In this document: piece by piece, positions 6,062 through 45,277 of the stretch
Numbering within the stretch: position 1 is the first letter of the stretch
Layout: every line of letters begins with the position of its first letter
NCBI GenBank assembly: GCA_043228905.1
Contig: JBHGNT010000007.1
Location: 3,968,001 to 4,032,000 of the forward strand
Reading direction: 5' to 3'
From: Azolla caroliniana
Taxonomy: Eukaryota; Plantae; Polypodiophyta
Length of the DNA stretch: 64,000 nt
Made by a program: the position numbers and the translations under genes
The notes under the pieces: model-generated
The model's database searches: none
The model's input: the letters and a program-made list of their open reading frames with translations, nothing else
Told to the model about the DNA's origin: nothing

Positions 6062-6185
6062 CGTTGATCGTGTGGAAGTGGAGGCGGAGATCGCGCTTTC
6101 GTGCTTTGTGCTCTGTGTGCTCTCTACGTTCTGTGTGCTCTGTACGCTCTGTACGCTTTGGTGAGTGAAATATGACGAGGTCTTC

Positions 6186-9657: not shown

Positions 9658-9979
9658 AGGAGTGATCATGAATGTATATTTGGCTATTAAGTGTAACTAC
9701 ATTCCGCTTGTAACAAATCGAGTAATATAAAATCATGTGTTTTGAATTCTTATGATTTCTAAAAAATTGTTTCTTATAAAATAACATTGGTTGTAAAGTT
9801 TGTGATATAAATTGAGAATGTATGTTTTTGAAATTCGTCTTTTTTTAGTTACTTCTAAATCACGAAAATAGTGGATTTTTAACCTTTTTCATAGTATGTT
9901 TGAACTTGTATGATACTGGTATCAATGTGTTTTGTAAAATCATTGAAAAACCCCTAAAATTTCCCTTATCCTTCCATTT

Positions 9980-10015
9980 ATGCGTGATCCTTCCACTTGT
10001 GAACGCGAACGTGTT
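9980..10015 (-). repeat. Right TIR of element A
   Basis: Reverse complement of 702-737; copia gag sequence starts immediately after. Confidence 0.92.
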
Positions 10016-13000: not shown

Positions 13001-16000
13001 GAGTGGAATGATGGATTATGAAATCCTCTACAAATCGGCTACACCGATTCGTCTCAAAGGGTACACCGATGCCAACTGGGCTGGCTACAAAGCCAACAGA
13101 TGATCCACATCGGGCTTCGCCTTCTCCTTCGACAGTGGAGCCATATCGTGGAGCAGTAAGAAGAAACCGACAATCGCACTATTGGGCATAGAGGCCGAAT
13201 ACTGGGCGATTATTGCCGCATGTGAAGCCATTTGGCTAAAACGAATCTTGAAGGATCTGGGCGTTCCCATCAAGGATTCAATTCTCCTCTACTACAACAA
13301 CATGAGCATCATCCACCTGGCCCGCAACCCAGTGTTCCACGCTCGGACTAAGCACATTGAAGTGCATTATCACTTCATCCGAGAGCATGTCCTAAATGGA
13401 GATGTCGACCTACAACACATCAGCACGAATCTGCAAACTGCTGACATCTTCACAAAGGCCCTAGGGGCCGACAAGCTATGACATTTCACGACGAACTTAG
13501 GTCCTTTTTATTACCGACCAACCGAGCTTGAGGAGGAGTATGGATGAAGAACCGTTGAACGAACACAAGAGTGAGACAACTATAAGAAGTCGAGCTTCTA
13601 CTTGCATGTTTGAACACATAAATCTGATATCACACGAGCCAGGTATAAATATTCTCATTTACTCACGTGCTCTAGTCTACGCCTCCTCATCTTTTCTTTT
13701 CTCTTCATGTCTCTCGACCTGAGTTCCAAAATCTTGAATTTTCAATTGCATATTATAGGGTGCATCGTAAGCCTCCATTCACATGTCTGAACACAAAAAT
13801 CCGATATTACACGAGCCAAGTATGAACATTTTCATTTACTCACGCGCTATTGTCTACACCTTCCTCATCTTTGCTTTTCTCTTCACGTCTCTCGACCTGA
13901 GTTCCAAAATCTTGATTTTTCAATTCCATATTATAGGTGCATCATTAGCTTCCATTCGTATGTATGAACACAAAAATCCGATATCACACGAGCCAGGCAT
14001 GAACATTTTCATTTACTCACGCGCTCTTGTCTACGCCCTCCTTATCTTTGTGTTCAATTCCATATTATAGGGTGCATAGTTAGGATCCATTCGCATGTTT
14101 CAACTCAAAAATCCGATATCACACGAGCCATGTATGAGCATTCTCATTTACTCACGCACTCTTGTCTACGACCTCCTCCACATTGCTTTTTTCTTTATGT
14201 CTCTAAAGCTGAGTTTCAAAATCTTGATTTTTCAATTCCGTATTATAGGGTGCTTCATTACCTTCCATTCGCATGTTTGAACACAAAAATCCGATATCAC
14301 ACGAGCCATGTATGAACATTTTCATTTACTCACATGCTCTTGTCTACACCCTCCGCAACTTTGCTTTTTTCTTCACGTCTCTCAACCTGAGTTCCAAAAT
14401 TCTTTATTTTTCAATTCTATACTATAGGGTGCATCGTTATCTTCCATTCGCATGTTTGAACACAAAATTTCGATATCACACGAGCGAGGTATGAACATTC
14501 TCATTTACTCACCCGCTGTTGTCTACGACCTCATTTACTCTCGACCTGAGTTCGAAAATCTTGATGTTTCAATTCCATATGATAGGGTGCATCGTTAGCT
14601 TCCATTCGCATGTTTGGACACAAAAATCCGATATCACACGAGCCACGTATGAACATTTTCATTAACTCACGCGCTCTTGTCTACGCCCTCCTCAACTTTG
14701 CTTTTTCCTTCATGTCTCTCGACCTGAGATCGAAAATCCTTATTTTTCGATTCAGTATTATAGGTTACATCGTTGGCTTCTATTTGCTTGTTTGAACACA
14801 AAATCCCGATATCACACGAGCGAGGTATGAACATTTTAATTTACTAAAGCGCTCTTGTCTCTTCATTTCTCTCACCCTGAGTTCGAAAATCTTCAATTTT
14901 CAATTCCGTATTATAGGGTGCACCATTAGCCTCTATTCGCATGTTTGAACACAAAAATCCGATATCACACGAGCCCGTTATGAACACTTTCATTTAGTCA
15001 CGCGCTCTTGTCTACGTCATGCTCATCTTTGCTTTTCGTTTCATGTCTCCTGACCTAAGTTCCAAAATCTTAATTTTTCAATTCCATAGTCTAGGGTGCA
15101 TCGTTAGCTTGCATTTGAATGTTTGAACGTAAAAATCCGATATCAGGTATGAACATTACTCATTTACTCACGTGCTCTTGTCTACGACCTCCTCAATTTA
15201 CTCACGTATGAACATTCAAACATTACTCATCGTTAGCCAGGTATGAACATTCTCATTTACTCACGTGCTCTTGTCTACGACCTCCTCAATTTTGCTTTTC
15301 TCTTCATGTCTCTCGACCAGATTTCCAAAATCTTGATTTTTGAATTCAATATGATAGGGTACATCCGTAGCTTCCATTCGCATGTTTGAACACAAAAATC
15401 CGATATCACACGAGCCACGTATGAACATTTTCATTTACTCATGCGCTCTTGTCTACGCCCTCCTCAACTTTTCTTTTCTCTTCATGTCTCTCGACCTGAG
15501 ATCAAAAATCCTTATTTTTTAATTCAGTATTATAGGTTACATCGTAGACTTCTATTCGCCTGTTTGAACACAAAATTGCGATATCAAACGAGCCAGATAT
15601 GATTTTTCTTCACATCTCTCGACCTTAAATCGAAAATCTTCATTTTTCAATTCCATATTATAGGGTGCATCGTTAGCCTCCATTTGCATGTTCAAACACA
15701 AAAATCCCATATCAGACGAGCCAGGTATGAACATTATCATTTACTCACGCGCTCTTGTCAACTCCTTCCTCATCTTTGCTTTTCTTTTCATGTTTCTCGA
15801 CCTGAACTCCAAAATCTAGATATTTCAATTCCATATTATAGGCTGCATCGTTAGCTTCCATTCGTATGTTTGAACACAAAAATCCGATATCACACGAGCG
15901 AGGTATGAACATTTTCATTTACACACACGCTCTTGTCTACGCCCTCCTCATCTTTTCTTTTCTCTTCATGTCTCTCGACTTGAGATCGAAATTTTTTATT

Positions 16001-26126: not shown

Positions 26127-26931
26127 TATCTATTCCGCTGCACATAATCACTCTCGATTCTTCACAATATATATATATATATGCATGGTTAGATGTGGGT
26201 TATACCAATCTAACTCGACTATTTATCAGGTTAGATCCTTATAACAGAGTTAGAATATATGGGTTAGAAATACGGGTTAGATGGAGATAGCTTGGTTAGA
26301 ATATACTTATTGCATATGTTCACGAGGTTAGAATACATTAATTGAGTTAGAGATAACATGCCTATTAGGCCTAACAATCGACAACGGTTCGGTTCGGTTT
26401 GAGAGGATCCAAACCGAACCATTTAAAATTTTTGAAACCTGAACCAAACCAAACCAAACCGCGAAACTATTAAATTGTTTTCAAACCATAAAAACTGCGG
26501 TTTCGCGTTTCGGTTTTGGTTTTCAACATAGGTCTAATTTTTAATTTTTTAAAATTTTTAATATTTCATTATTTAAAATTTTTAAGATGTTCCTAAAATG
26601 TGAGAATAAGGTGTAAAAAAAAAAGATTATATATTATAAGAGATGATGATAACAGATTATATATTATAAGAAGAGTAAGTACAAAAGGGCTATGAGGCTA
26701 AAGACTAGCGTTGAACCAATTTGGTTCAACATAATGCCTAGTGCCCTCTTTTATAGTGTTCTCAGGAGTAATCCTGAAGCTTCTAGAATGTTCCAGAGAA
26801 ATCTGGAATATACATTGATTTCCTATAACAAAATTTAAATGAAAATAATATCCTACATATTACAATAGATGATATAATAGTCAAGAGCTCGACCCATATA
26901 ACCTAAGGTCATGGGTTCGAGTCTTGCCATA

Positions 26932-28185
26932 TCATGACACTATCCCCCCTTTAAAACGACGAGTGTCACGAGTCGTTTTGGATGGAGGACCCGGTTTGTG
27001 TGGATATTGCCGATGGAAGTCTTCAAGAAGCGCACGAGCATTGGTCACATTCTCGATCGGTTCCCAAGTACGTTCGTTAGGACTATAGCCTAGCCAATCG
27101 ACTAGATAGTAGAGCTTGTTGCGAACAATCTTGGAATCAAGGATGGCGGCAACCTCGTACTCCGGTCCATCTTCAAGCTCGATCGGGGGTGGAGGTTGTA
27201 TAATACGCCTTGGGATGGTGCTCTCGTGATAGGGTTCAAGGAGAGAATTATGAAACACCGGATGTATCCGAAGTTGAGGAGGTAGATCGAGACGAAAAGC
27301 GACATCATTAATCTTCCCGATAATACGGAAAGGACCTAATCGCCGATAATCCAACTTCTCACATGGGTGAGTAGTCTTGATGTGTCGTCGTAGCAGTCAC
27401 ACCCGATCTCCAATGTTAAAACTAGATGGAAGTCGATGACGATCCGCGTAGACCTTGTGTGTTTGTTGAGCTTGCTGGAGACGAGTACATAAATCTGCTT
27501 GTATCTTGCGTAACTGCTCCAAACGATCCTCCGCGCAAGGATTTATGGACACCTCTGGGGTTTCAAGTACACTCCACCGAGGGTGACATCCCATATAAGC
27601 ATAAAATGGCGAAACTTTAGTCCATGATGCCGACATACTTCACGCATGACAACTTCGACGGTGTCTTCACTTGAGATTTCCTTAGTACATGGCAAGAAAT
27701 GAGCCATCTTCGTATATCGATCTACCATTGTTAGAATCGCATTCAACCCCTTAGAGACTGGAAGATCTGTGATGAAGTCGAGAGCAATGGATTGCCATGG
27801 CTTGCTTAGAATTGGTAATGGTTCTAATAAACCATAGGGATGATGCCTCAGCATTTTTGCTCTGCAGCATGTATTACAAGTCCGAACAAAATCTTCGACA
27901 AATTGTTGCATACGGGGCCACCAGAATGATCGTTGTACTAAATCTAATGTTTTAGTACTACCAAAATGCCCAACTGTATATCTGTCATGACAGTTTTGTA
28001 CTACTCGAAGGCGGCAAGAACCATTAGGAACATACAAAAGTTCTTTAAAGAAGAGTAATCCATCATGGTATTTGAATTGCCGATAGTCCGTACCTGGTGG
28101 TTGTGATTGTGAACACAATGCTCGAGAGGGATCAATCTGTGCTAGTATAGCTTGGGCGAAAGCATCTATCTTCAGGTCCGCACGT
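26932..28185 (-). pseudogene. Chromovirus integrase + chromodomain (with deletion/frameshifts)
   Basis: ORFs 27543-28262, 27397-27636, 26932-27354. Confidence 0.88.
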
Positions 28186-31100
28186 TGTCGTGAAGAAAAC
28201 CGTCCACAAGCGGAATCGGTGCACCGGAGCGTAGGAACCGGCTCTTCTTGCACGTTGTACATAGGAGAGAATGTTGTACATAGAAGATCCTAGGTAGGTA
28301 GAATCGGTAGGTAGGGAGTTAATAGGAAACGACTCCCTTTTTGCCTATAAGAGGAGGGAGACGAGGAGGAGAAAGGGGATCGCGGAGAGTCGAGGACGAA
28401 GTGCTGTCGGTTTGCGTGCGAAGGCTTCTCTCTCTCTCTCTAGTTCACAAACTCCATAGCTTCCATCTGTGCAGGTTTCGGGAGGCTCGCGCTGCTCTGA
28501 GGAATGCCCGAGTGCTTCCGGCAGCACCTCCAACCTGCTCTTGTCTTTCTGTGCGTTTACGAACAAGCATCGGCATCTGTTCGCCGGCCTGTTCGGTTGT
28601 AACCGACTTCGTGTTTTTTTGCTTCCGTGTTCTTGTTGTTGTCTTTGTTAATACATACATACATTCGTGTCTCTCTGTGTCGCTGTCCCACTCGCTTCTT
28701 TGTGTCGAAGGGCCGTGTCCCTGTGAATCTACTCTCGCACGTAGTGGGTCTCTTCTCCTTTCTCTCTTGCTCTTTGGTACAGGACCCCCGAGGTCCCGCC
28801 TCATTCCACGCATCCACGAGGATTACCTCGACATCTTTGGTGAACCCGACGTGAAGGAGGCGGTAGAAGAGTAGAAGATGAAAGGGTCGGATCTTGCAGA
28901 GGCCATGGCTTCGGCAGTGGATCGGATATTGAGTGCACGCGAGGGCACCGGCGCCCTCGACAGAGCCATTGAGGCGGTCGTCGGTACGATCGGCCGGTTT
29001 AGCGGAAAGGATGCCACGAAGTATCTGGCGTCCTACGGGGCAGAAATGCTAATGCGGGACATTCCGGAAGACAGGCGTCTTGCCGGGTTTCCTCGAGTGG
29101 CGATGCCGAGCATCCATGCGGAGGTGCTCGAGGTGCGGGCGGAGAGCCGAACCTGGGAGGAGTTCGAAGGCCGACTCCTAGAAAAATACGGGCTGGACGA
29201 CGCGCTCCGACTTTCGAAACGAGACTTCATGGAATGGGTGGAGTCCCCCAGCAAGGGAAGAAACGCGTCGGCACTCCTCCGGGAGTTCGAAGAACGCTTT
29301 GCGCGCCTTTCAGCGCTTGACCGAACCATTCTAGATACGAGCCGGGTCCTACTGTTCGTCAAGTCGGTGGACGAGCGGGACCGGGATCAAGTCGGCTCCT
29401 TGCGGTTAAGAGAGTCTGTGGCCGTTTCGACAAACGGCGAGAATGGGCTGATAACGGGGCGGCCGGTGCGGGGTCTGTCACAGCAAGGAGGCTTGAATCG
29501 GCACCGCAAGGGAAAAGGGAAGAAACCCGGGAATGGCTCGAAACCGGCCCGACTTCGACCGGCATGGTCAGTGGCTCGTCCGGAGGAGCAGCGCTGGAGG
29601 AGTTGACGCGGGCGATAAAGGATCTCCAGATCGCCCAGACTCGAAGGGAAGGCGGCGAACCGGCTCGTGATCGACGGCCGGCAACAGGGAACAGGTGCAT
29701 GTGGTGCGACGAGGTCGGCCACATCCGGAAGGACTGCGGTGATTTCGCAGAAGCGTTGAGGAACCGGGTGGTGTACCTGTGGGAAGGCCGGGTGCACGCC
29801 GGCGACACCAGGAGGGCCCTTAACCGAAACGACGGGCGAGGAGGAATGAAGAGACTGATGGAAGAGGCAGCGGCCCGACACGTGGAGGCCATCCACTACT
29901 CGGCGTCGGCCGGTATTTGGGTCGGGGGCAGCGAGGCTCAAAAGGAGAGCAAGGACGGGTTTTGGTCGGCAATGCTGGAAGGCCTTGCCGGCGTACGACT
30001 AAGGAAAGATGAAACGGACCGCGCTGAGAGACGGGTTCGGGAAATAACCGGGTGGAGCAATCCGGTCGAGGAGAAGACGGGCTTCGTAGAAGCCGCCTGC
30101 CGGAACTACGAGGCTCTGGTAGAAGACAAACGAGTGGGGAAAGCCGGAGCGGCCGGGCCCTCACAACGGTACGAGACCCGATTCGGGCAACGACGGAACG
30201 ATGTCGGTGGGTCCAGCTCGTAAGATAACCCCAGGAAGGGCGGATACCGACTGGGGACGGAAATAGAAAGGACTACGGACCTACGGAAGGTCCTAGAAGA
30301 ACGGATCCTCGACAGCAAAGTGGAGCTGTCATTGTGAGAGGTGCTAGGGATCGCAAAGAAGGATTTCCACGACTCCATTGTGGACCTGGTGAAACGGAAG
30401 AGGCTGTCGACGGAGACGGAGCCGGGAAGACCGGTGGAGGTGCGGACGACGCACATCGACGACATGGCGCTGGAAGATGAGTGGACGGAGAGCCACTATT
30501 CGAGGTCACACTGGGCCCGAGCGACCACGGAGACCCCGGTAAAGATCGGAGATGTTCAGGAACCGGTGGTGGCGTTGGTGGACCACGGTTCGGAAATAAA
30601 CCTAATGTCCATGGACTTCTATAAGAAGGGAAAGTGGCCGATCAACACCAGGCACGGGTGGAAGATACGGGCGGCGATGCGCACCACCGAGGAACTGCAC
30701 GGGGCCTGCCCGAATGTGCGAGTGAAGATCGGCGACGTCGAGATTGACCAACACTTCTTCGTACAGGAGACGTCCTCGCATCCGGTCATATTAGGGGAAC
30801 CATACATCACGGCGGCGAGAATGGAGACCAAGGTGCTAGACAACGGTTCGGCCTACGCGAGGGTCAAAAGCCAGGACGGGCGCCATTCGGTCCAATTTCT
30901 GACGGTGCGACCGAACCACGAGCGAAACCGCGAATCCCTCGGTGGCGAGAACCGGGAGGATTTTTAGAGAGGGCTGCCAAGGCGTGGGGCCGAGACAGTC
31001 CGGACACTCGGGAAAGACCCCATGATTGTACGATAGGTAGGAGATTTTGCTTCTCCGACAACGGAGGGTGTATGATAGTCGGCATCATTGGCTGAGAAAA

Positions 31101-34100
31101 GACAAGGGCGGAAGTGCGACTTCGAGCGTGCGGAGTTCTCGGCCCGAACGAGGAAATCAGCGGGGCCGTGGAGGCGGTCTCCTTCGACGACACCTTGGGG
31201 ATGCTGAGGAAGGTAGCCGGAGAAGACCTTAACGAAGACCGGACGATACCGGTATGTTCCGAAGAGATGTACGAAGTCATCGCGAACTTCAGTCGGGGGC
31301 TCGGGTCGGATCGGACGGCCTGGGTTAGCACGAAGTATAAGACTGTGGACCGGAAGGTAAGGCCAGTCGCGGCACCCTTACCGGAGGATAGCGAATCCCG
31401 AATCAGAGGGGTTGCGTCGGACCCCAGTTTACGAGATCCGGTCTGCATAGGGCACACCTTCACCGACGGGACGCTACGGGAGCTCAAGATCGGTGGGGGC
31501 GGGTTCCTGCTGCCGGCGGAGGAAGACCGGTTTCGGAGGATGCTCGGAAGGCACGGGAAAGCCTTCGCATTCTCACCGGAAGAGATAGGGTGCGTAGACC
31601 CGACGATCGTGGAGCCGATGGTGATATTCACGGTACCGCATGTGCTGTGGAATCTCAAGCCGATTCCGGTACCGAGAGCTCACATCCCAAAGTTGATGGA
31701 GCTATTGAGGCAGAAAGTAGAATGGGCATTCTTGAACCGTCGAGTGCCCCATACTCGAACCGATGGTTTACCGTACCGAAGAAAAACGGAACATTGCGCT
31801 TCATTCAAGACCTGCAGCCGGTCAACAGAGTGACCATTCGGAACACAGGAATCGGACCGACCATAGACGAGTTCGCAGAGGCCTTCGCCGGAAGGTCGAT
31901 TTACTCGGTCGGTGATCTGTACTCAGGGTACGACCAGTTCCAGCTAACCGTGGAGAGCAGAGACATTACGACGATGCGAATTCCCCTCGGCCTGGTGCGA
32001 ATGTGTACCCTGCCACAAGGAGGGACCAACTCGGTAGCCCACATGGTGAATGCAATGAACAAGGTACTGAGGGATTGCATCCCGGACATCACCATGCCGT
32101 TTCTAGACGACATCCCGATCAAGGGGTGCCCGGTGGAGGAGAAGGACGAGACAGTCGGGCCGGACGGATGCCGGCGATTCGTGGCGACACACATCAACGA
32201 CTGCGAGAAGGTGCTACAAAGGCTAGAGGATGCGAGGCTCACCTTCTTCGGGGAGAAATCGGCCTTCGGGCAATCGGAAATCCTAGTGGTCGGACACCTA
32301 TGTGGACCTTATGGCCGGAAGCCGTCTCCGGCAAAGGTAGAAGCCATCTCCGCGATGAAGACCGATTATAGCTCGGTTACGGAAGTTCGGAGGTTCCTGG
32401 GGGCATGCGCGTTCTACCACATATGGATCCCGCATTACGCCCATGTTGCGGAGCCGCTATACGGGTTGCTGAAGAAAGGGCGAAAATTCGAATGGCGAGA
32501 CGAGCACACGGAGTCGGTCCGGAAGCTGAAGGAAGCTCTTGCGGCAACACCGGCGCTCCGAAAGGCTGTCTACGAGAAGGGTACCCCGGTATACATAACG
32601 GTGGATACGAGTCCGACCGGGATCGGATGGGTTGTCAACCAAGAAGACGGGGACGACATTCGGTTCCCGATCCAATTCGGCGCGAAGGTCCTCAGTGAGC
32701 AACAGCGAGGGTACACCCAGGTTAAACGCGAACTCTGGGGTATCGTTTCGACAGTAAAGGCCGACAAAGACTACCTGATCGGGACAGAAGTGATTATCGA
32801 GACGGATTGCCTGCCAATTCTCGGCATGGTTTCCGGATGCGCGACACTGGACCTGGCGATGCTTAGGTGGATAGCGTACATCAAGTCCCTGGACCCGGAA
32901 ATACGGCACATTTACAGAAAGGACAACGCCATGTCCCTGGATGGTAGATCTGGTGACGATGCCGATGGGCGTAGGACAGATGCGGTATCTGGTCCTGGCT
33001 CGGGAAGATCTGACGAACTAGGTGGAAGGCCGAGCCCTTCAGAACAAAACGACCGCGGCCGTATGTCGGTTCCTGATCGAGGACGTGATATGCCGGTACG
33101 GGTGTGTCGGGAAGATCGTGGCTGATCGCGGGGAGTTGGACGCCGAAGAGGCCGAGGAGCTGTTCGACTGGCTAGGAGTCAAGCTCTCGCTTACCACTGC
33201 GTACAATCCGGAGGCGAATGGGAAGGTGGAGCGCGGACACGGACCGATCGTCAAGGCATTAGTTCGGGCATGCGGAGGGCAAGTCGGGAACTGGCCACGG
33301 CTGCGACCTTACGCGTTGTGGGTTGACCGTACTACGCACAGTTCGGTAACCGGATTCATGCTGGCAGAGCTCATGTTCGGGCAGAAGCCGATCATGCCGA
33401 TGGAACGAACGATCTCCTCATGGGCAACCGTGGACTGGAGAGACGAGATGAGCCGAGAGGAACTGTTGACAGCGCGCATACGGCAGCTCGAGCGAAGACC
33501 GGAGGACGTGGAGCAGGCTGCGGAAAAGCTTCGGGTGGCAAGGACGAGGAACAAGGTCCGATTCGACCGAACGCACCGGCTCCGACCAAAGAAAATCGAG
33601 GAAGGCGACTGGGTGTTAGTCTACGACAGCAGCCTCGACAACCAACACCGAGCGACACGGAAGTTCGCAAGAAGGTGGTTCGGGCCTTACGTGGTACAAA
33701 GCGCCAACGACAACGGGACGTACCATCTGGCGGAACTCGACGGTACGAGAATGGCGATACCGGTAGCTGGGAAGCGGATCAAAGCGTTCAAGAAGCGTCA
33801 CGACGACGAGCCGGATCCGGTTGGCCTGGACCGCGACGACAAACGATCCGAAACCGAGGAAGAACCGACGGGCGGGGAATGAAGGCTGGACCGGTTTTCT
33901 CCGTCCCGACTCAATTTGGCGCATGCCGGTGGATGCGCGGTTAGGTGGGGGCAGATGTCGTGAAGAAAACCGTCCACAAGCGGAATCGGTGCACCGGAGC
34001 GTAGGAACCGGCTCTTCTTGCACGTTGTACATAGGAGAGAATGTTGTACATAGAAGATCCTAGGTAGGTAGAATCGGTAGGTAGGGAGTTAATAGGAAAC

Positions 34101-34603
34101 GGCTCCCTTTTTGCCTATAAGAGGAGGGAGACGAGGAGGAGAAAGGGGATCGCGGAGAGTCGAGGACGAAGTGTTGTCGGTTTGCGTGCGAAGTCTTCTC
34201 TCTCTCTCTCTAGTTCACAAACTCCATAGCTTCCATCTGTGCAGGTTTCGGGAGGCTCGCGCTGCTCTGAGGAATGCCCGAGTGCTTCCGGCAGCACCTC
34301 CAACCTGCTCCTATCTTTCTGTGCGTTTACGAACAGGCATCGGCATCTGTTCGCCGGCCTGTTCGGTTGTAACCGACTTCGTGTTTTGTTGCTTCCGTGT
34401 TCTTGTTGTTGTCTTTGTTAATACATACATACATTCGTGTCTCTCTATGTCGCTGTCCCACTCGCTTCTTTGTGTCGAAGGGCCGTGTCCCTGTGAATCT
34501 ACTCTCGCACGTAGTGGGTCTCTTCTCCTTTCTCTCTTGCTCTTTGGTACAGGACCCCCGAGGTCCCGCCTCATTCCACGCATCCGCGAGGATTACCTCG
34601 ACA
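28186..34603 (+). mobile_element. Nested non-chromo gypsy LTR retrotransposon, tRNA-Trp PBS, 4-bp TSD
   Basis: 648-bp LTRs at 28186-28833 and 33956-34603, ACGT TSD, PBS TGGTGAACCCGACGTGA. gag (CMWCDEVGHIRKDC), PR (LVDHGSE), RT (FLDD), RH and INT with stops and internal deletions (~29400, ~32935). Confidence 0.95.
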
Positions 34604-36661
34604 ACGTATGATATTGATAACGTGGGAATCCATGGGCATGCCAAAAACCTGTGTTGCTTGCAGTCGTGCCGGTTCCAAGATTACTTGCTTTTGGTTATCA
34701 AAAGCTGGCTCACCGAGACGCGGTGTTAGATACGAACGCCGTGATAATACATCTGCCTTCCCTTGGTGCTTCCCCGGACGATATGTAATTTTGAAGTCGA
34801 AACGCGTGAGGAAGTGGGCCCATCGAGCTTGACGTCGATTTAACACTCGAGCATCCTGAAAGTAGGCAAGGTTTTTATGATCATTGAATACGACGACTTG
34901 ATGAGAGGACCCCTCTAAAAAATGCCTCCATTGCATAAACGAGTCCACTATTGCCAATAGCTCCTTATCATGAATTTCGTAATTGATTTCGGCGGCGTCA
35001 AACTTGCGTGAGTGAAAAGCCACAGGATGTAGCTTCTCATCATTCCCTTGTTGTGACAGAATGCTCCCCAATGCGAAATCCGATGCGTCAACTTCGATAA
35101 TGAATGGTAGTTCCGGATCGACATGAGCTAGAATTGGAGCCGATGTGAATACCTTTTTAAGACTCTCGAAAGCCATATCTGCTTCTTCAGACCAAACGAA
35201 CGATTGTCTCTTCCTGGTAAGCTGTGTGAGAGGCAGAACGAGCTTTGAGTAATCTTGTATAAACTTCCGGTAAAAATTGGCAAACCATAAAAAGCATTGC
35301 ACATCCCGCACCGAGCGCGGAACCTGCCATTCTACCACCATCTTGACCTTAGCTGGGTTCATGGAGATGCCTTCTGAGGAAATGACGTAGCCGAGAAATT
35401 CCACCTGGTTGCACCCAAAACTACATTTTTCTAGCTTTGCGTAAAGGCCATGTTCTCGAAGTCGTTTTAGTACTAACAGTACATGAGAATCATGCTCTTC
35501 TTCGGTCTTTGAATAAACCAGTAGATCATCCAAGTAGATAATCAGACACACATCCAAGAGATCTCGGAATATATCATTTTCCATGTGCTGGAAGACGGCT
35601 GGCGCATTAGTGAGGCCGAACGGCATGACCGTATACTCGAAGTGCCCATATCTAGTGCGGAATGCGGTCTTCCATTCATCTCCTAGTCGGATCCGTACGA
35701 GGTTATAGGCCCCCCGTAAGTCGATCTTTGTGAAGAACCTGGCACCATTGATCCGTTCTAAAAGACTTGAGATAAGGGGAAGTGCATATCTATTGCGGAT
35801 TGTAACTTTATTCAAGCCACGGTAGTCTACCACCAAACGAAGTGAGCCATCCTTTTTCTTGACGAAGAAAATGGGTGCGCCGGCTGGAGATTTCGAATGT
35901 CGAATGAATCCATTCTCCAAGTTCTCCTCTATATAGGCTCGAAGGACTTCTAGCTCGGTTGGTGACAAATTGTAGATCGGTCCCCATGGTGGCTCTTTCC
36001 CCAGTTGTAAATCGATGGGGCAATCATATGGTCGATGGTGAGGAAGTGTATTGGCTCGTACTTTATCGAATACATCGGCATAATGATGATACTTCTTTGG
36101 AAGTTGAACGGTGGACTCCTCTTTAATTGTGTCGGAGGGTTTTAGTGATATTGCGAAGAGAAACATTTCTTCCTTGCATCCTTCTTCCCGCAACTAATGT
36201 AGTGAAATGGTGGCAATCTTCTGAGTAGATCCTCGGGTTTGTCGACACTGGATTTCTCTTGTTCTCCAATCTATGTCTGGGTTATGTAACTCGAACCATG
36301 GTAATCCCAAAACGATGGGATGTTCTGGGATACTAATAATGTTAAATGATACTACACATGCTAAGTTATCTAGGACAATATTAACGGGTTCTGACTCTTC
36401 TATGATATTTTCGGAAGCAATGGGACGACCATCAATGACGACTACAGAGGCTGGACACGGAAGTTTTCTAAGAGATATCTGATGAGCTTGGGCAAAATTC
36501 CTATCCATAAAGCAAGAATTAGCTCCGGAGTCTAGAAGTGCTAAGACGTGTACTGGAGGGGTACTTTTAGTACTAACTGTTACTTGGGCTACGAACACAT
36601 TGCTAACATGCTTAGAGGGAATGGAACCACTAATGGGTTGCACATATCTAGGGCTATCCAA
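34604..36661 (-). pseudogene. Chromovirus pol (PR-RT-RH), N-terminal part
   Basis: ORFs 36194-36661 and 34571-36193; the frame continues at 28185 after the nested insertion. Confidence 0.88.
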
Positions 36662-38034
36662 CCAAACGGCTCCTATTTTGGCTGGACTTAGTCATTTAAC
36701 TCTTCTTCTAACTGACTAAGGACATCAAATTTGTTCGCTAGATCTAGGCTATTAGTACTATTAGTACTATCAGATATCCCTACTGTAATAGGCTCAGGTT
36801 TAGTACAATTAGAACTAACAACTATTTGGTTTACCTGTCTTCTTGGCCTATGGGGACAATTGATTGCAATGTGTCCTGGTCCACCGCAGTAGAGACATAG
36901 TCGATTTGTTCGGCGTCGCTACTTTTCTTCTTCGGATAATGGTCCTCGACGACGTGTAGTGTCAATCTCCATCGGAGTCGGAGTATTCACTAGAGGCGCA
37001 TTATAGTACTCCCTGGATAAAGGTTTTGCTACCATTGAGGCGTAGGTGGGTTCTGATCTTGCTCTCAGCATTTGTAGCTGTCGTTCCGAACGTCGCTCAA
37101 AGAGGCGGTTATCACATCTTACCGCGCGACTGATTGCTTCTGTTAAGGACTTTGGCTCTTCAGGGAAAGTCAAGAGTAAATCCTTGACATCGTTGCGTAA
37201 ACCATAACGAAATTGCTCCATCAGCGCTTGATCATCCCAAGGGATGTTAGCGGCAAGTAGACGGAAATCTGCAGCATATACAGAGGCTGGACGGTCTCCT
37301 TGGCGTAATCGCCGGATTTTGTTGATTGCGTTCCTCATGCTGTCAGTATCCCCAAAGCATGCTTTAAACTCACCTATAAACTCTTCAAAGTTGTTGAGTA
37401 ATGGAGATTCCTTTTCCAACAGTGGAGTGAACCATGCCAACGTTGAGCCACTTAACAGCGTCCCTACTAAACCCACTCGCGATGCATTGGTGGGATATCG
37501 GGAAGGATGCATTTGAATAACTAATCGTACCTGATTAAGGAACCCTTTAAATTGCGATCGTGTTCCATCGAACTTCATGGGAAGGCCAATCTTGGGTTCC
37601 TTATGAATCCCTTGTGTTCCAGGGCCTTGTTGTTGCATCGCTACGATGGTTGCTTCGAGTTGTTGCACGCGTAATGCAAGTTCCCCATGTTGTTGTTGGG
37701 TTTGCTGCTTTTCTAAGGAGATTTGTTGAAGATCCCCCAGCAACCGTTGATTTTCTTGTTCCAAAGCAAGGAACTTCTCTTTTAGGCATTAAAACTCCGA
37801 GAAAACAGATTGATATTCCTGTGCACTAACTGTGGCCATGGGATGAAAAGAAAAGAGAAATAAGAGATTAGTATGAAGGGATAGAGACAGAAGGAAAATT
37901 GGTTCAAACTGTCAGGAATAGTACTAAACAGAGATAGGATTAGTACTAAACAGAGAGAGAATTAGTACTAGAGAAGGGAAGTACTATTAGAACTAAGGGG
38001 ACGGGACTGCATAAGACTCCCGAGAGAGGAAGAG

Positions 38035-38084
<50 letters not shown>

Positions 38085-39484
38085 GACGAGAGATGATGAT
38101 AATAGATTATATATTATAAGAAGAGTAAGTACAAAAGGGCTATGAGGCTAAAGACTGGCGTTGAACCAATTTGGTTCAACATAATGCCTAGTGCCCTCTT
38201 TTATAGTGTTCTCAAGAGTAATCCTAAAGCTTCTAGAATGTTCCAGAGAAATCTGGAATATACATTGATTTCCTATAACAAAATGTAAATGAAAATAATA
38301 TCCTACGTATTACAATAGATGATATAATGGTCAAGAGCTCGACCCATATAACCTAAGGTCATGGGTTCGAGTCTTGCCATATCATGACAAAGTCAGCATT
38401 CTGCCCTGTTTCTCCATCAACTGCTTCCTTATCATTCAGAGTGTGATACTCCCAATTCTGAATGTATGCTTTGTTTAGACAATATCTCCAATTTCCTTGC
38501 ACACAATGGAAGTAAAAACAAGTCAATTCTCTAACCGCAATACAATGACCATCCAACCTGGAATAACCACGAACAGCATGCAGAGATCGCAATTCGGGAA
38601 TTCCTTAGCACTCCTAGGTCTTCTCCCTATTTACTTCATCTATCTTCACTTCCCAAAATTCACGTTTGATATCTCGGACTTGCGAGGAATAAACACCTGT
38701 TGCACTCGTTGACATATTTGTTCTTAAAAATTCAACTACATGTGATGAACAATTCATGTGCACACCATCTGTCTTTAGTTGTTCATGGGTAAGTGCCCGC
38801 TTTATAACAATCCCTGCACCATCATGTTCACCTTTACCATGGCCAGACCCAAAAAAATTCCATCTCATCTCCAAACCTGTTATAGCAGGATACCTCCCCA
38901 CAAAATAAAATGGGCGTCGAGCCTTGATTTGTGACGCAGCTCCGTCAGACCAGACCCAATGTTGAGTAAGCTCCAAACGTTGAGCTAATAACCACAACCA
39001 ATGTAACTTAAAACAGTGTTGGACGAACAAGGTATCATGCTTCTTATCATCAGAAATAAAGAAATGAATTACTTTTTTATCACCTGAAACTCGAAAATAT
39101 GTTATATGCACAAAAATGGTTACAACACCGGGACATTTGAAACAGGTAATATGTCGCATTTTGAGAACTGCCCATCAAAAAATGACACAAATTAGGGTGA
39201 TTCACAAAAAGGGGTGCCGCATGCGTAAAGGAATTTTAAAAATGACCCAAAAATATATTGATTTTTAACATGTACGGAAATTTAGGTGTTCAAAAAAATG
39301 CCTAAATAATGGACATGCCAAACTTACAAATGAATGTCCAAAATGACTAACCCCAATATTTATAGAAATTCTGAATCCAAATCTTGATGTGCAATACAAT
39401 ATTTATAGTTAACGTATCAGGACAATCATTTTTCAAGTTTATTTCATCATCTTCATACCCATTAGATGAACTAGTACGAGTTTA

Positions 39485-39785
39485 TGAGGTCTCATCCTCA
39501 TCATCAATGGCAACTAATGCATTGTGTTGATCCAATTGCAATCCAACCTCATCGAGTTTATGAGTCATGCTTCTTGTTTGTCCTTGTGTTGTGTCTGAAG
39601 CCACATTCTAGATCCTCTTTTACTATCTTCATTGTGGTCTGTCACAGATAACTTGTTCTGGTCAAAGATAAGTCATACACTAATATATAAACATAATCCA
39701 ATGTAAGAGTAAATGTGCTTGATGGATCTTTCCTCCTCACTTTTTGGTTATGATATTTCATTATGTACTTTCCATTTACAAGATT
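39485..39785 (-). pseudogene. C-terminal remnant of an element-A-type transposase
   Basis: Translates GKY...TLTLDYVYILVYDLSLTRTSYL*QTTMKIVKEDL / QGQTRSMTHKLDEVGLQLDQHNALVAIDDEDE, aligning with STLDISDVDIIVYDFTLTKAGRLRKSTIDIIKEKL...QRQTRSATYNLESNHLVYDEDNALIGTSEDDEE. Confidence 0.85.
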
Positions 39786-40209
39786 TGATTATGTGAGAGA
39801 AACTTTCTACCAAAATCATTAGAATCTAAAAAATGTCTTAAAGATGTTTTCCATTTTTCTTAGATTCTCATAGTAAGCCTTTGATGTCGTACAGAAATCC
39901 AATTCATTCCATCTAGATTTGACACAACATGTCAAATTTTACTCTATACATCTAGAATTGGATATAATGCATCAGATTCTTATAAGTCTTGGAATTTCTT
40001 TAAAAATTTCCATTAAAAAAATACTCTTGCATTTTAATGCATTGCATTGAATTCTAGCTACATAGACTAAAATATGATACATTGCATGGATTTCCCAAAA
40101 ATACATAAATAAATACAAATTGAAAAAATAAAACATTTTCCCATAAATAAATAAATAAACATTTTTTATTTTACTCGTAAATAAATAAATAAAAATTGAA
40201 AAATTAGAT

Positions 40210-41875
40210 TTCAATGGAAATCCAATTTCGTGCATCGGATTCAATTGAAAATCCAATTTCTCTTATTTTTTTGAAAGCTTTCTTATTTTTTGAATTGTTT
40301 TTGAATTTGTTTTTATTTTTCCCATAAAAAAATAAATAAAAATTGAAAAAATGGATTTTCAACGGAAATCCGATGCACTGCATCAGATTTTGGTTGAAAG
40401 TCCACTTTTACGTATTTTTTTCCAAATTTGCTTTTTTTTTTGAATTTTTTTGAATTTTTTCTATAAAAAATAATTAAATATTGAAAAAATAGATTTTCAA
40501 TGGAAATCCGATGCACTGCATCGGATATCCGTAGAAAATCCACTTTTTCTTTTTTTTTTCCAAATTTTCATATGTTTTAGAATTTTTTTGGTATTTTGTT
40601 TGTCTATTTTCTCATAAATAACTATATAGAAATTGAAAAAATGAATTTTCAAAGGAAATCCGATGCATTGCATCGGATTTCTATTGAAAGTTCACTTTTT
40701 GCTATTTGTTACCAAATTTTCATATTTTAAAATATGTTTTTGTATTTTTTAAATTTTTTTTTATTTTTTCCCATAAATAAATAAATAAAAATTGCAAAAA
40801 ATGGGTTTTCAACAGAAATCCGATGCACTACATCGGATTTCTATTGAAAATCCATTTTCTCTTATTTGTTTCCAATTTTTCAGATATTTTGAATTTGTTT
40901 TTGTATTTTTTTGAATTGTTTTTGTTTTTATCATAAATAAATATATAGGAATTGAAAAAAAATGGATTTTCAACGGAAATCCGATGCACTACATCGGATT
41001 TCCATTGAAAGTCCACTTTTTCTTGTTTGTTTACAAATTTTCTTATTTGTTTATATTTTTCTCTAAAAAAGTGTTAAAAATAAACAAATTGTGATTTTCT
41101 CCATTTAAAATGATGTGTTTTCAACGGGAATCCGATGCAGTGCATCGGATTCCCGTTGAAAACAGATCATTTTCAACAGGATTTTCAATGGAAATCCGAT
41201 GCACTGCATCGGATTTCCGTTCAAAATCACTGAGTTTCAACAGAAATCCGATGTAGTGCATCGGATTTCCGTTGAAAGTCCAATATTTTTCTTATGTTTT
41301 TTCATAAAACATTAATTTGCAATTGAAATCCGACTCAATGGTTCAGATTTTGTTGAAAATGTAATATTTTTTTATTATCTCATTGTTTTATGAAAAACCT
41401 AAAAGAAATTTGGATTTTTAATTGAAATTCGATGTAGTGCATTAGATTTCAGTTGGAAATCCACTTTTTTAATATATTTTTATTTATTTTTTGAAAAAAT
41501 GAAAAACAATTGAAAAGCAAGAGGATTGCCAGCTAAAATCTGATGCAATGCATCAATGTCTAGCTGTATAGACTACGATCTGATGTAGTGTATCGGATTT
41601 CAGTTGAAAAGCCGTTTATTATTTTTTTATATGGAAAATAAATAAATAAATAACATTGGAAAAAGAAAAAAGAAAAATGGATTTTCGACTCTAATCCAAC
41701 GCATTGCATTAGATTCTAGCTATATATACTAAAATATAATGTAGTGCATAGTATTTTAGCTGAAAATCCATTTTATATTTTTTAATGGAAAAAATTTTAA
41801 AAATTACAAAAAAAAATAAACTTGGATTTTCAACTGAAATCTAGTGCATCACATTGGATTCCAATTAAAAATCCA
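40210..41875. repeat. Array of ~16 palindromes GAAATCCGATGCA-S-TGCATCGGATTTC in element B
   Basis: Perfect 47-bp palindrome at ~41118-41163; further copies at ~40365, 40502, 40654, 40814, 40975, 41191, 41243, and decayed copies to ~41870. Confidence 0.9.
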
Positions 41876-41917
41876 AGATTTTTTATTTTTTCAAATTTTA
41901 TTGTTTCAAATTTTCAA

Positions 41918-42358
41918 TGGGTTTTAGATTAGTTTTCTGACACAGGTATATAATATAAAACTTACATCAATTTAGATTAACGTTATATTTTATTCTTCAG
42001 TTTGATGTTATCTGTGCAATTTCATTCTACTGTCATGTACTACTAAAACATACGCCTTAAAGATTATCAGGAACTCTGTTGCATTAGAGAAGGACCTTGA
42101 GCAAGTTAATGTCATCAAAATGAGGATCCAAGGTATCTGGGGTTGTCCTGATCAAGACCAAGAAGTTGGGGCAAAGCATATCAATAAAACTTAGATGTTC
42201 CAGATGACTTTTAGAAAACTTGTGGAACTATAGATGAAGACGCAGGGCAACTTGTTGAATTAGAAGACGTTTCAGAGTCTGAACATACTAACAATTCAAC
42301 TTAGCGTACTGACGAAGCCAATGAGGACGATCCTGATGAAAGAGCTAATCCTGAGTAG
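41918..42358 (+). pseudogene. Remnant of the MTase gene (motif I exon end, intron, last exon)
   Basis: WVLD*FSDTG|gtatat...intron...|TTKTYALKIIRNSVALEKDLEQVNVIKMRIQGIWGCPDQDQEVGAKH matches WILDLFSGT|..TTSACALKLFRNTVALEKDEDQVIFINMRIKALWECPDQDEEVGAKN. Confidence 0.88.
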
Positions 42359-43124
42359 ACGGCGACATATTACCTGTTTCAAATGACCCGGTGTTTTACC
42401 TGAACTGAACACCAATGCATAGATTGAATTTCATTCTGCTGCTTGAAAGTATAATTCTCTGTGAAATCTACTACTGAGACTATTACATCATTTGGGAAAT
42501 CAGATATGCAAGTCTTAAACTGATGGGCCTGCCATGAATAAATGAAGTTGTGTTTAATGAACTTTCCTAGAGATACTACAAACAGAGACACCAAGTCCCT
42601 TGGTTTAAGCATCTTCCGAACTAGATCCTTTCTTTTACACACCTTTCCTTCGAAATTGGTGTTCACTGACTCAATTAACTTCACAGAGATAAATATTTCA
42701 CTACTCAATTCATTTGGACACCACCTAAATCTAGTAGGGCCACAATCTTGACATAAACCCATGACACATTTATACCTATGGAAGACAGCGTCAGTTTCTC
42801 TCGGACACAATATTGAATCTAATACATAACTCATTGAAGAGATAACGTGCTCAGATGATTTACACTCCTCTTGTGGGCTTGATCGACAGATTGGGCACCC
42901 ACATGTGCAAACTGTATTAGTTAGGGATGCGCTATGGTGACGTAGTAGATTAACATAGTCCTTCAGAAAACCCATCTGTACATGGTAAATGCAACAACAT
43001 GTATATCGATCCTTTAAGCATCTCACAAAGTGTGGCTTAAGAGACTCGAATGTTCGTAGTTGAACTTTGATATTTGGATGCATTCGTTTGAACCTAATAA
43101 ATAAATCGACGTGCATAATAAAGG

Positions 43125-43670
43125 GGAATTAGTTATTCTCGTAACTAGCTAACTATCCTAGTAGCTAATTAGTTGTCCTAGTAGCTAATTAGCTATCATG
43201 GTAGCTAATTAGCTTTCCTAGTAGCTAATTAGCTGATAATAACGAAATTAGTTATCCTAGTAGCTAATTAGTTGTTCTAGTAGCTAATTAGCTATCATGG
43301 TAGCTAATTACCTATTCTAATAGCTAATTAGTTAATTACCTATTCTAATTAGCTATTCTAGTAGCTATTTAGCTATCATGGTAGCTAAAACCCTATTCTA
43401 ATAGCTAATTAGCTATTCTGGTAGCTAATTATCTGGTAATAACTAAATTAGCTATTGAGAATAGCTAATTAGCTATCATGGTAGCTAGTTAGCTATTTTG
43501 GTAGCTAATTATCTAGTAGTAACTAAATTAGCTATTGAGAATAGTTAATTAGCTATCATGGTAGTAGCTATTGAGAGTAGCCAGTTACCTATGTAGTAGC
43601 TATCCTAGTAGCTAACTGAGGTAAATGTAACTTATAAGCTAATTAGCTTTTCTGCTAACTGAGCTAATTA
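43125..43670. repeat. TAGCTAATTAGCTA palindromic minisatellite in the Sola2-like transposase intron
   Basis: About 20 imperfect copies at ~20-bp spacing; the same motif occurs at 45220-45253. Confidence 0.85.
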
Positions 43671-45277
43671 ACTTTCCGTGTACAGTCAAAACAAATGTTG
43701 AGATAAATGTAAATACCTGAGGTACATCAAGAAGATGAATTGGATGCTCCTCGTATTGATTTCTTCCAACACGTTTCCTGCATAAATCCTTTTTATTGGG
43801 TGAAACCCTACTCTCATTAGTCCAAAACATTGTGATTACATCCTTGATTTCTGATGTTATGGTTGTCATTGGCTTACATCTTGTAGTTAGCTTTAGTAGA
43901 CTAGTTCCTTCACCCGAGGAAATTATACGGTTCAATGTATTATACACTGTTTTTCTACTAACACCAATTACCTTAGATAGCTCACTGATGTTTATATCGT
44001 CAACATCACTATTAAGTAACATCATTAGACTAGACCTTTTTAAGACAAGATCATCTTCTGACCTGCTCATGGATACGAAACTATTACGAAGATTATTTAC
44101 TAAAATAGATGATATGTTTGCATTAAGACCATCACAATCAACTAAGTCCTTTATCGATGGATCATTTAATATTCCATAAAGTACTACCTTCTTTTCTTCA
44201 TTGTTGATGTGCTTGGTTTGAACATTGAAATAATCTACAACCTTTCTCTCTATGATGGTAGTCGCATTACTTACATTCTCAGCTAAACTATCCTTACCTT
44301 TACTGAGTGTGGCTTTCGTATCCTTCAACAATTGACGATGTTTCCTTTTTTTTGTTGCCCAAGTTGTGTCCTGATAGCATCATCCCTATCCTTATAATCA
44401 TTGAGGGGTAATTCTAAACACCCTTCTTCCCCTTCCATTTGGTTGGACATATTAAAACCCTAAATTTCCAGGAAAAAAAAACAAGTATTTAAGATGGCTA
44501 TGGGCAACAACAATACACAAGATTAGACACAACAATACACAAGATAATCAATAGACAAAAAAATTATTGCAATCCAAGACCGAACAATTGAGGAGTTCAC
44601 TCCATTGGATCGAACAGTTGAGGAGGCGATCCAGGACAGACCAATGGCGACAACTGAGTGTAGAATGTTGTCGTTGGATGAGTGAACTCCGTCAAATCCA
44701 AATGTGGAAGCAATCCAGGACTGGACAGTAGCGGCAACTGAGTGTAGAATGATGGCAATGGAGGAGAGAACCCCGTCAAATTGAACAGTTACCGATGATG
44801 CTTGGAATGCACAAAGAAGGCAACTGAGAGTAGAATGGCGGCAGTGGAGTTGTTAACGCCGTCGGGTCGAAAAGTGGCAGCAATACACGACCTTCACAGT
44901 AGCGGCCCCTGAGTGTAGAGTGGCGGCAGGTGGACTCAATAGGGTTTAGCAACAGTGGTAGCAACTAACCCACAATACTCAACTAGAGATGGCCTACATG
45001 ATGTGGCAAAGGATCATGCATAATGGTCCTAGGAATTCGATATATAATTTATGGTGCACATATCAATTTATGTTGCACGTTTATGTTGCACGTTTATGGT
45101 GTTCATTTACATATGTAATTAAAACACTCTAGTATTTTCAATGGTAGTTTTTTGCATAGTTAATTTATTAATGATGGCTTTTTGCTAAAATGACTATTTA
45201 TCAATGGTAGCTTTTTGCATAGCTAATTAGCTATGTCAAGGACATAGCTAATTGTTTCCACTCTCATGCTTTCACCC

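Follow-up and report, generated by a model that had tools for sequence, protein, structure and literature searches.

A decayed transposon in the fern Azolla caroliniana has lost both genes of its subfamily and retains, in many copies, the palindrome that lies between them

Within the 64,000-nucleotide stretch of Azolla caroliniana DNA analysed here (contig JBHGNT010000007.1, positions 3,968,001 to 4,032,000; hereafter the window, to which coordinates refer unless another source is named), an insertion at 39124-42395, which we call element B, is almost certainly a decayed, non-autonomous derivative from a second subfamily of fern transposons. Element A is the other ParB-methylase transposon in the same window. 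Element B is of the cut-and-paste type, is 3,272 bp long and has lost both genes by at least two internal deletions, not one. What it has kept is a palindrome that intact members of its subfamily carry once, between the two genes, and that B carries many times over. We consider, with good confidence, that the best explanation overall is a decayed derivative mobilised in trans, in which the palindrome may serve as a docking site for a ParB-methylase and site-bearing copies may be favoured.

The boundaries of element B are clear. Its terminal inverted repeats (TIRs) are 34 bp long, the left one (39124-39157, plus strand), which begins AACACCGGG, matching the right one (42362-42395, minus strand) at 33 of 34 positions, and they are flanked on the left by TTAC at 39120-39123 and on the right by a matching copy at 42396-42399, a target-site duplication (TSD). 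Removing the element together with one TTAC copy (39124-42399) restores the host reading frame, fusing the two minus-strand flanks into a 408-codon open reading frame with zero internal stops, as counted with a local script. Element B was inserted, with a 4-bp TTAC duplication, into a coding exon of a multicopy transposase-like gene, and the original prediction of a 3.27-kb insertion with AACAC-starting 34-bp TIRs and a clean TTAC TSD is upheld. Element B is the only one of the elements in which the TSD can be checked, the flanks of element A (ATCA/GCCA) and of an intact relative on public contig L020 (ATTG/GCCA) being mismatched, so that no TSD was found in the flanks of L020 itself. The 4-bp length of the TSD fits the Sola superfamily.

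The interrupted gene runs on the minus strand, the upstream half of the exon (42400-43116, with a Cys-rich stretch and a DFTENY motif) flanking the right end of B and the downstream half (38614-39123, with the motifs SDDKKHD, WSDGAASQ and GHGKGEHDG) flanking its left end. It belongs to a multicopy fern family of 46 clusters and has an upstream HTH exon and DDE-like motifs, features that speak for the proposal that B splits another transposase gene. The two halves were searched separately, the joined frame being used for the stop count only. Searches against Pfam, at E values up to 10, and profile-profile comparison with the DUF7869 alignment, both as a single sequence and as a 16-sequence profile, returned nothing, and because of these blanks we call the host gene a likely transposase and go no further. 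The suggested kinship with DUF7869 has as its sole basis the gene's language-model neighbours, part of which carry that domain. The host element also has a palindrome array of its own, unrelated to that of B, a caution against taking every such array as a sign of ParB.

The intact relative on L020 occupies positions 180-7773 of that contig, a length of about 7.6 kb, and has the same ends as B: the left end of B matches it at 33 of 34 positions and the right end, compared with the left end of L020, at all 34. A second copy of the L020 element, 98% identical, is present on contig L001. The L020 transposase ORF (507-3179, 890 aa) is intact, and the divergent ParB-methylase gene is represented by ORFs at 3739-7010. 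A single palindrome at 3629-3671 lies between the two genes and upstream of both: the first long methylase ORF is 68 bp away, the transposase ATG approximately 450 bp. Intact members of the B subfamily are therefore elements of about 7.6 kb in which a DUF7869-type DDE transposase stands head to head with a spliced fusion of a ParB-like module and an N6/N4 methylase, with one lineage-specific palindrome between them. The transposase of the fern family matches Pfam PF25273 (DUF7869) at E 4.5e-52; no mention of DUF7869 was found in the literature searched. That B represents a subfamily distinct from that of element A, as had been proposed, is supported by its ends, which share only AACAC with those of A and are exactly those of L020, and its transposase remnant groups with proteins about 57% identical to the A transposase.

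The ParB-like part of the fusion was recognised in element A, B itself having lost the corresponding sequence. Neither Pfam nor a profile search of PDB sequences detected a ParB domain in the exons of A. An AlphaFold model of the 339-aa exon of A (pLDDT 78.5) gave, in Foldseek, ParB and Noc structures as its 17 best matches, with PadC, KorB and sulfiredoxin lower (E from 4e-5, probability 1.0), and both a ParB N-terminal domain and a helix-turn-helix fold are found in the model. The exon of A thus carries a predicted ParB-like fold that is visible by fold search alone. The methylase part is seen directly in sequence: the A ORF at 2157-2540 matches PF01555 with 32.0 bits, against a cut-off of 26.7, and homologues match at up to E 7.6e-18. 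Canonical N6_N4 methyltransferases have (D/S/N)PP(Y/F/W) as motif IV and FxGxG as motif I. In the fern genes the sequence at motif I is DLFSGTG for L020 and DLFSGT for A, and at motif IV both have DIPY, conserved and non-canonical, a departure that counts against the main reading. Element B has lost motif IV, and its motif I is interrupted by a stop.

Remnants of both genes are still found at the ends of element B. The first 626 bp of B align to positions 180-807 of L020 at 67%. Next to the left TIR lies the transposase 3' untranslated region of the B subfamily (39158-39424, minus strand), collinear with the transposase end of L020, followed by the decayed C-terminus of a DUF7869 transposase, the last ~120 codons of the protein (39425-39788, minus strand). 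In tblastn, the best matches to this remnant, P0016, P0017 and P0024, are 58-63% identical to it and reach their final residue, with a single frameshift in B around 39609-39616; element A matches less well (36-43%, E 5e-5 and 2e-4), collinearly with A 9382-9624. Past the transposase-side deletion junction is a linker (39790-40196) with degenerate palindrome copies, weak ones starting at 39957, 40032 and 40072, and this linker is 92% common to contig L059. At the other end, the methylase-side deletion junction lies just upstream of 41916, and the sequence that follows on the plus strand comprises the final ~30 nt of the exon that encodes methylase motif I, with a stop inside (41916-41945), a 91-nt remnant of the last methylase intron (41946-42036) and the decayed last exon of the ParB-methylase gene (42037-42358). 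A four-way DNA alignment of A, L020, L032 and B supports the exon end and the intron, which has the same codon position as in A (2191-2103, 89 nt), L020 and L032; its donor GT at 41946 is intact, and its acceptor has mutated from AG to AT. The last exon contains a stop at 42192-42194 and then a later frame change, and the natural methylase stop codon sits 3 nt from the right TIR. Translated, 42030-42218 (plus strand) is 54% identical over 63 aa to the last exon of A (2109-1921, minus strand; E 3e-19), and the last exon is 65% identical over 74 aa to that of L020. The alignments to the element A proteins are thus significant at both ends, and the predicted remnants were all recovered: a transposase C-terminus at one end, closer to P0016, P0017 and P0024 than to A, and at the other the end of the motif-I exon, an intron of about 90 bp at the position seen in A, and the last exon. 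With ends that match an intact partner and remnants that carry stops and a frameshift, B is a non-autonomous derivative.

The centre of element B is occupied by the palindrome array (40197-41890), which scans and alignments resolved into palindromes of about 45 bp with the core AATCCGATGCA-N-TGCATCGGATT. When mismatches are scored over 20 specified core positions, 12 copies are found at four or fewer mismatches and 19 at six or fewer, ranging from about 39957 to 41860. They are spaced 138-161 bp apart on the left and 52-156 bp apart on the right, and six of the palindromes fall into tandem units of 138-161 bp. The spacers are low-complexity A/T runs, the GC content over the 40001-42000 composition window is 24.5%, and the outer palindrome copies are decayed. 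In an alignment of five of the tandem units, with 40732-40776 masked, the palindrome columns are more conserved than the spacer columns, and B, L012, L003, L020 and L002 share a conserved core. The number of palindromes per element is one in L020, two in L055 and in L062, 7-12 in L006/L012, 11 in A, 12-19 in B and at least five in the liverwort locus L064. A central array is thus present in B as predicted, and the palindrome was indeed kept through the deletions; the array itself was not spared by them but is a later amplification, since intact L020 has a single palindrome, and for the same reason an array is unnecessary for autonomous copies.

The arrangement of the two genes is not peculiar to the B subfamily. 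A transposase head to head with a ParB-methylase gene, with palindromes between, is found in three fern subfamilies (A, L020 and L062) and also in the liverwort Riccia sorocarpa (L064), and in L001, L062 and L064 the called genes are the transposase and the methylase gene only. Related half-sites (GGAA-N-TCGAT-R-C) occur at the same place in the three fern subfamilies, and Riccia has a different, 16-bp palindrome at the corresponding place. Terminal repeats were looked for briefly at L062 and L064, and none was convincing; at Chara loci, where ParB-methylase copies are present, there is no DUF7869 transposase within 10 kb. The shared layout supports the earlier suggestion that the methylase cargo is an old and integral part of the transposon family.

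A search of public contigs with the B TIR identified 60 further loci with unrelated flanks at which the terminal 30-mer of B forms an end, divergence beginning directly outside AACACC. These contigs are short-read assemblies of repeats, and their joins could be chimeric. Two other gutted elements were joined from contig ends. One, from L006/L012 and L011 (96-99% overlap), is 2.5-2.9 kb long, and in it exon 1 of the methylase gene breaks off at residue ~152 and continues directly at residue ~77 of the last exon; the other, from L055 and L046 (95% overlap), is about 1.4 kb long and contains two palindromes. Together with B these are three structurally independent non-autonomous types, with different breakpoints, each of which lost both genes and kept the palindrome, at 2 to 14 copies by one count. 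In five end-bearing contigs (L017, L029, L057, L058 and L059) the palindrome is absent within 1.1-2.4 kb of the end, and the interiors of these contigs are unrelated sequence.

We suggest that intact relatives with matching 34-bp ends supplied the transposase that mobilised element B in trans, and that the palindrome may be a docking site for the element's own ParB-methylase, in the manner of parS for ParB, the Noc-binding site for Noc and the operator for KorB. The docked protein would mark or regulate the element carrying the site, and gutted copies that keep or multiply the palindrome would be favoured because they could still attract it. Only the position of the palindrome and its lineage-specific variation point to docking, a role to which we give even weight for and against. 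The proposed cis-requirement for the array survives in altered form: three independent derivatives kept the palindrome, and intact L020, with its one copy, shows that no array is needed. As far as sequence comparison can tell, a cis-requirement is favoured that would concern the palindrome and not the array as such; that the palindrome is truly required in cis for spread is possible, with our judgement leaning somewhat against it. Rather doubtful, in our view, is the more specific idea of a cis-acting "passport", in which the palindrome would recruit ParB-methylase supplied in trans and the resulting 6mA or 4mC mark, which sliding of the ParB kind might extend, would either permit transposition or protect the element from host silencing. 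Any copy, autonomous or gutted, would then have to carry the palindrome, and non-autonomous copies would compete for the ParB-methylase by multiplying it.

Other histories and other roles must be weighed against docking and trans mobilisation. That B was never mobilised as a derivative, a full-length copy having inserted here, decayed and lost its genes in place, would fit its age, evident from its stops, its frameshift and the loss of a splice acceptor, and also its methylase-side junction and missing 3' untranslated region, which were not found in any other copy. The transposase-side junction, however, is the one junction of B that recurs at a second locus: L047/L059, which has other flanks, agrees with B at 92% identity for the first 1,104 bp, a stretch that takes in this junction and the linker. 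At least the transposase-side deletion therefore predates transposition, and decay in place is very improbable. A neutral origin of the array, by contrast, concerns the palindrome and not the history of B. Internal tandem arrays form readily in non-autonomous DNA transposons, and a hairpin-prone palindrome might seed tandem amplification and attract deletion breakpoints with no selection involved, as the free variation in copy number from 1 (L020) to 12-19 (B), the decay of the outer copies and the A/T-rich spacers of B would allow. Yet in each of the three derivative types a 7.6-kb element must have suffered deletions to either side of a site of 45 bp, the core is conserved both between elements and, relative to spacers, within the B units, and the position of the site is kept across subfamilies and, with other sequence, in the liverwort, so that we regard a mere by-product as quite unlikely.

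The palindrome might also be functional in another way: instead of offering a landing site for self-methylation, it would be a regulatory operator, or a site bound by the transposase, within the divergent promoter region that the two genes share. Its task might be autoregulation, as with KorB or P1 ParB, or the enhancement of transposition from within the element, and the arrays of gutted copies would then be decoys or enhancers. The closeness of the L020 palindrome to both the methylase ORF (68 bp) and the transposase ATG (~450 bp) is what an operator would lead one to expect, the fold search returned KorB, which is a repressor of the ParB family, and the host element carries a palindrome array as well. 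Half-sites are absent, however, near the ends of L020 and B, where transposase binding is expected, and among the proteins that the element encodes the ParB module alone is predicted to bind palindromes in a sequence-specific way, which makes an operator or transposase site unlikely.

Docking by a ParB-like protein has precedents in bacteria and plasmids, where the sites of the ParB family (ParB-parS, Noc-NBS and KorB-OB) are short palindromes, often in several copies, parS measuring 16 bp. The fern module resembles these proteins in its N-terminal domain and helix-turn-helix fold; it differs in being fused to a methylase within a eukaryotic transposon, and the palindromes are about 45 bp long. 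No fern observation here suggests segregation of the ParABS kind. As a derivative, B is comparable to Ds of Ac and to dSpm, which likewise have the ends of an autonomous partner, a deleted interior, no remaining coding capacity and a transposase acting in trans, but unlike them the three independent fern derivatives have retained, and multiplied, a single site that is central rather than terminal.

The overall design, with ParB-domain accessory genes and adjacent inverted-repeat arrays in transposons, was already published for algae in 2025. For Sola1-1_Ec32 of the brown alga Ectocarpus, the authors propose an accessory protein that acts on its own element, by binding and modifying it (Dinatale et al., Genome Biol 2025, PMC12477816). 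That element is 21.5 kb long, compared with 7.6-9.3 kb for the fern elements, and the portion of the article available to us does not mention binding-site palindromes or derivatives, both of which are present in ferns. In Plavaka, an EnSpm/CACTA-type transposon of the red alga Bostrychia, PAG3 combines a ParB-like N-terminal domain with a DNA-modifying enzyme, inverted-repeat tandem arrays adjoin the gene, and again the proposal is that the protein binds to, and modifies, the transposon that encodes it (Petroll et al. 2025, bioRxiv 10.1101/2025.02.11.637652). The fern family shares with it the ParB-fused modifier, the adjoining inverted-repeat arrays and the logic of self-binding; it belongs to another transposon superfamily and has an amino-methyltransferase in place of a 2OG-dependent oxygenase. 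Non-autonomous derivatives that retain the repeats, which ferns have, are undescribed in the accessible part of that preprint.

ParB-fused DNA-modifying genes of transposons have so far been known from the annotation of algal genomes, and their role, to bind and mark their own DNA, has only been guessed. Ferns offer many datable copies, including gutted ones, and three derivatives that discarded the genes yet kept the putative docking site amount to a natural experiment. Docking predicts subfamily-specific binding of ParB modules to their palindromes, amino-methylation centred on the palindrome, and mobility or silencing of mini-elements that depends on the site; should these predictions fail, the arrays would be another instance of satellite growth in dead transposons. 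If the passport reading is true, a eukaryotic transposon would have borrowed its means of self-recognition from bacterial parS-ParB, and the selection acting on its non-coding derivatives would make that system visible.

Element B occupies positions 39124-42395 (3,272 bp), ends in inverted repeats (39124-39157 and 42362-42395) identical at 33 of 34 positions, and is flanked directly on both sides by TTAC (39120-39123 and 42396-42399). Its two flanks are parts of one minus-strand exon of a multicopy transposase-like gene, and excision of 39124-42399 regains a 408-codon frame with no internal stops, the join reading ...HWCSVQV-TIFVHITYF.... Together, the matching ends, the TTAC pair and the restored host frame establish a genuine insertion with these exact limits and a 4-bp duplication, confirming the predicted 3.27-kb insertion with 34-bp terminal inverted repeats and a TTAC target-site duplication. 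The window is plant-like and rich in transposons, and GC content is 24.5% at 40001-42000, a composition window covering most of B's palindrome array, versus 36-58% nearby. The minus strand at 26639-38390 holds a Ty3/gypsy-type retrotransposon, with gag, protease and RT-RNase H at 34571-37764 and 301-bp repeats (26639-26939 and 38089-38389) that are 97.7% identical; ~225 bp separate its end from the exon of the host gene, and it may truncate the interrupted host element.

Element A, at about 702-10015 in the window, carries a DUF7869 transposase and a ParB-methylase gene. Compared with it in six frames, B gave two collinear minus-strand matches of 39485-39785 to the C-terminus of the A transposase (9382-9624; E = 5e-5 and 2e-4) and a strong plus-strand match of 42030-42218 to A's last methylase exon (54% over 63 residues, E = 3e-19). 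The transposase remnant, which has one frameshift, matches three related transposases (P0016, P0017 and P0024) at 58-63%, reaching their last residue; this subgroup, its closest kin, is only ~57% identical to A. A four-way DNA alignment places the final ~30 nt of the motif-I exon at 41916-41945, a 91-nt intron that keeps its donor GT at 41946-42036, and the last methylase exon at 42037-42358, all on the plus strand, with the intron at an identical codon position in A and two relatives. The original prediction of a transposase C-terminus, motif-I exon end, shared intron position and last exon in B was borne out in every detail, with significant translated alignments at both ends. One stop now interrupts the motif-I stretch and another the last exon (42192-42194), and the intron acceptor has changed from AG to AT. 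B is dead and non-autonomous.

Look-up of one transposase of B's subgroup identified a contig, L001, that ends in B's terminal repeat (33/34) and carries a transposase and a divergent ParB-methylase gene. It is inserted in an intron of an A-like ParB-methylase gene (its flank, 6127-6268, is 94% identical to window positions 3099-3205 in A), so that an intact element of B's subfamily lies within an A-like gene; the two subfamilies thus occur together and nest within each other. Scanning metagenome contigs with the terminal 30-mer yielded 60 further loci, all from one ENA assembly series, and the sequence beyond AACACC differs at every one, so the family is mobile, has inserted at many sites and does not require a strict target sequence. 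L020 holds a complete element of 7,594 bp (180-7773), 98% identical to L001, with an intact 890-aa transposase ORF, methylase ORFs at 3739-7010 and, between the two genes, exactly one palindrome (3629-3671); no half-sites were found near its ends. B's subfamily thus has the predicted transposase, palindrome and methylase layout, but its intact element carries one site in place of an array. Element A is flanked by ATCA (698-701) and GCCA (10016-10019), without a clean 4-bp duplication, and the right flank of L020 also starts GCCAT; this may reflect chance, decay or a misplaced boundary. Assembly coverage is 50-111x for contigs of element sequence (L020, L001, L048, L006, L012 and L015) and about 1.5-5x for most unique-flank contigs, which suggests, roughly and across differing samples, tens of copies each of the intact and the 2.5-kb gutted forms in the sampled plant.

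Pfam assigns the A transposase ORF to DUF7869 (E = 4.5e-52). Among the 46 database relatives of this transposase, those that are named come from ferns (Ceratopteris, Adiantum) and one liverwort. The A methylase ORF matches N6_N4_Mtase, a domain found at the C-terminus of database homologues. Its large 339-aa exon had no match by Pfam or PDB sequence search; in a Foldseek search with its AlphaFold model (pLDDT 78.5), ParB and Noc proteins took the top 17 places, aligned over about 290 columns, and PadC, KorB and sulfiredoxin came lower in the list (E from 4e-5, probability 1.0). This is the fold of a ParB N-terminal domain plus helix-turn-helix. In the predicted methylase, motif I is canonical and motif IV reads DIPY in both A (2569-2916, minus strand) and L020 (5722-6264), conserved between them but unusual, in place of the common (D/S/N)PP(Y/F/W).

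Between its coding remnants, at about 39957-41860, B holds a ~45-bp palindrome in 12 good and seven weaker copies; its core is AATCCGATGCA-N-TGCATCGGATT. Six copies lie within 138-161-bp tandem units, and a comparison of five units shows much stronger conservation in the palindrome columns than in the A/T-rich spacers. Other gutted derivatives carry an identical core; they come from short-read assemblies of repeats, and the contig joins are provisional. One type, joined from L006/L012/L015 (methylase end) and L011 (transposase end) across overlaps of 96-99%, spans 2.5-2.9 kb, has 7-12 palindromes and almost no transposase coding sequence, and fuses the first methylase exon at residue ~152 to the last exon at residue ~77. 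Another (L055 plus L046, overlap 95%) is about 1.4 kb with two palindromes, and L003 combines a decayed, internally deleted transposase gene with three. Breakpoints differ among B's type and these two gutted types on both sides of the palindrome, and by sequence comparison the three appear to have arisen independently. None of five other end-bearing contigs (L017, L029, L057, L058 and L059) has a palindrome within 1.1-2.4 kb. Unrelated sequences fill their interiors, which may stem from nested insertions, truncations or forks in the assembly, and these contigs are neutral on retention, neither for nor against.

That B simply decayed in place is improbable: L047/L059, whose flanks are unlike B's, is 92% identical to B's first 1,104 bp, including the transposase-loss junction, so at least that deletion predates transposition. 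Intact relatives, whose ends are identical, would have supplied the transposase that moved B. The observations behind the original prediction were confirmed; its interpretation holds in part. Retention and multiplication of the palindrome in three independent gutted lineages favours a role in cis, but intact L020 has one site and no array, and a true requirement in cis is a tentative proposal. We regard it as an even call that the palindrome is the docking site of the ParB-methylase, given its position in a divergent promoter region, its lineage-specificity and its standing as the only plausible site for the element's one sequence-specific palindrome-binding fold. The protein would then mark or regulate whichever element carries the palindrome. 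Arrays as such are no proof of docking, since an unrelated array of short TAGCTAATTAGCTA-type palindromes, in both orientations, is present in the element that B interrupted (43127-43620). On one side of this host array is the host HTH exon (43639-44331, minus strand), on the other the exon that B split. The palindrome being an operator or transposase-binding site is a less probable reading, and somewhat less probable again is neutral satellite growth with deletion breakpoints biased to the palindrome.

The layout also extends beyond these two subfamilies. The head-to-head gene pair recurs in L062, a third fern subfamily with about 60% identity to A, where two palindromes of a related form, GGAAGTCGATGC...GCATCGACTTCC, separate the genes; 4.5 kb of complex inverted and tandem repeats (99-4633) adjoin its methylase gene's 3' end. 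The liverwort Riccia sorocarpa (L064) also has the transposase and ParB-methylase pair, and here a different palindrome, 16 bp long (TGTATKCSSGMATACA), is present at least five times between the divergent genes, with more copies near both genes' 3' ends, possibly close to the element's ends (sites at 8374-8541, 4686-4701, 10221-10255 and 14569-14603). The proposal that the cargo is old and integral to the family is therefore supported for land plants. In GCA_003427395.1, which from the accession prefix we take to be Chara braunii, two loci (L065, L066) hold several ParB-methylase homologues within long gene models, with no DUF7869 transposase within 10 kb.

The overall design is already known. 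A Sola1 element of Ectocarpus encodes an N4C/N6A methyltransferase with a fused ParB-like domain, which its authors propose binds and modifies its own element (Dinatale et al., 2025, PMC12477816). Plavaka elements of a red alga carry a ParB-oxygenase gene with adjoining tandem inverted-repeat arrays, and self-binding and self-modification are proposed there too (Petroll et al., 2025, bioRxiv 10.1101/2025.02.11.637652). ParB-HTH-fused Dam-type methylases are listed in chlorophytes and chytrids (Iyer et al., 2016, PMC4738411). For the fern family a Sola1 label is tentative, the 4-bp duplication being the feature that fits. To this the B locus contributes a subfamily from land plants, together with evidence from non-autonomous derivatives.
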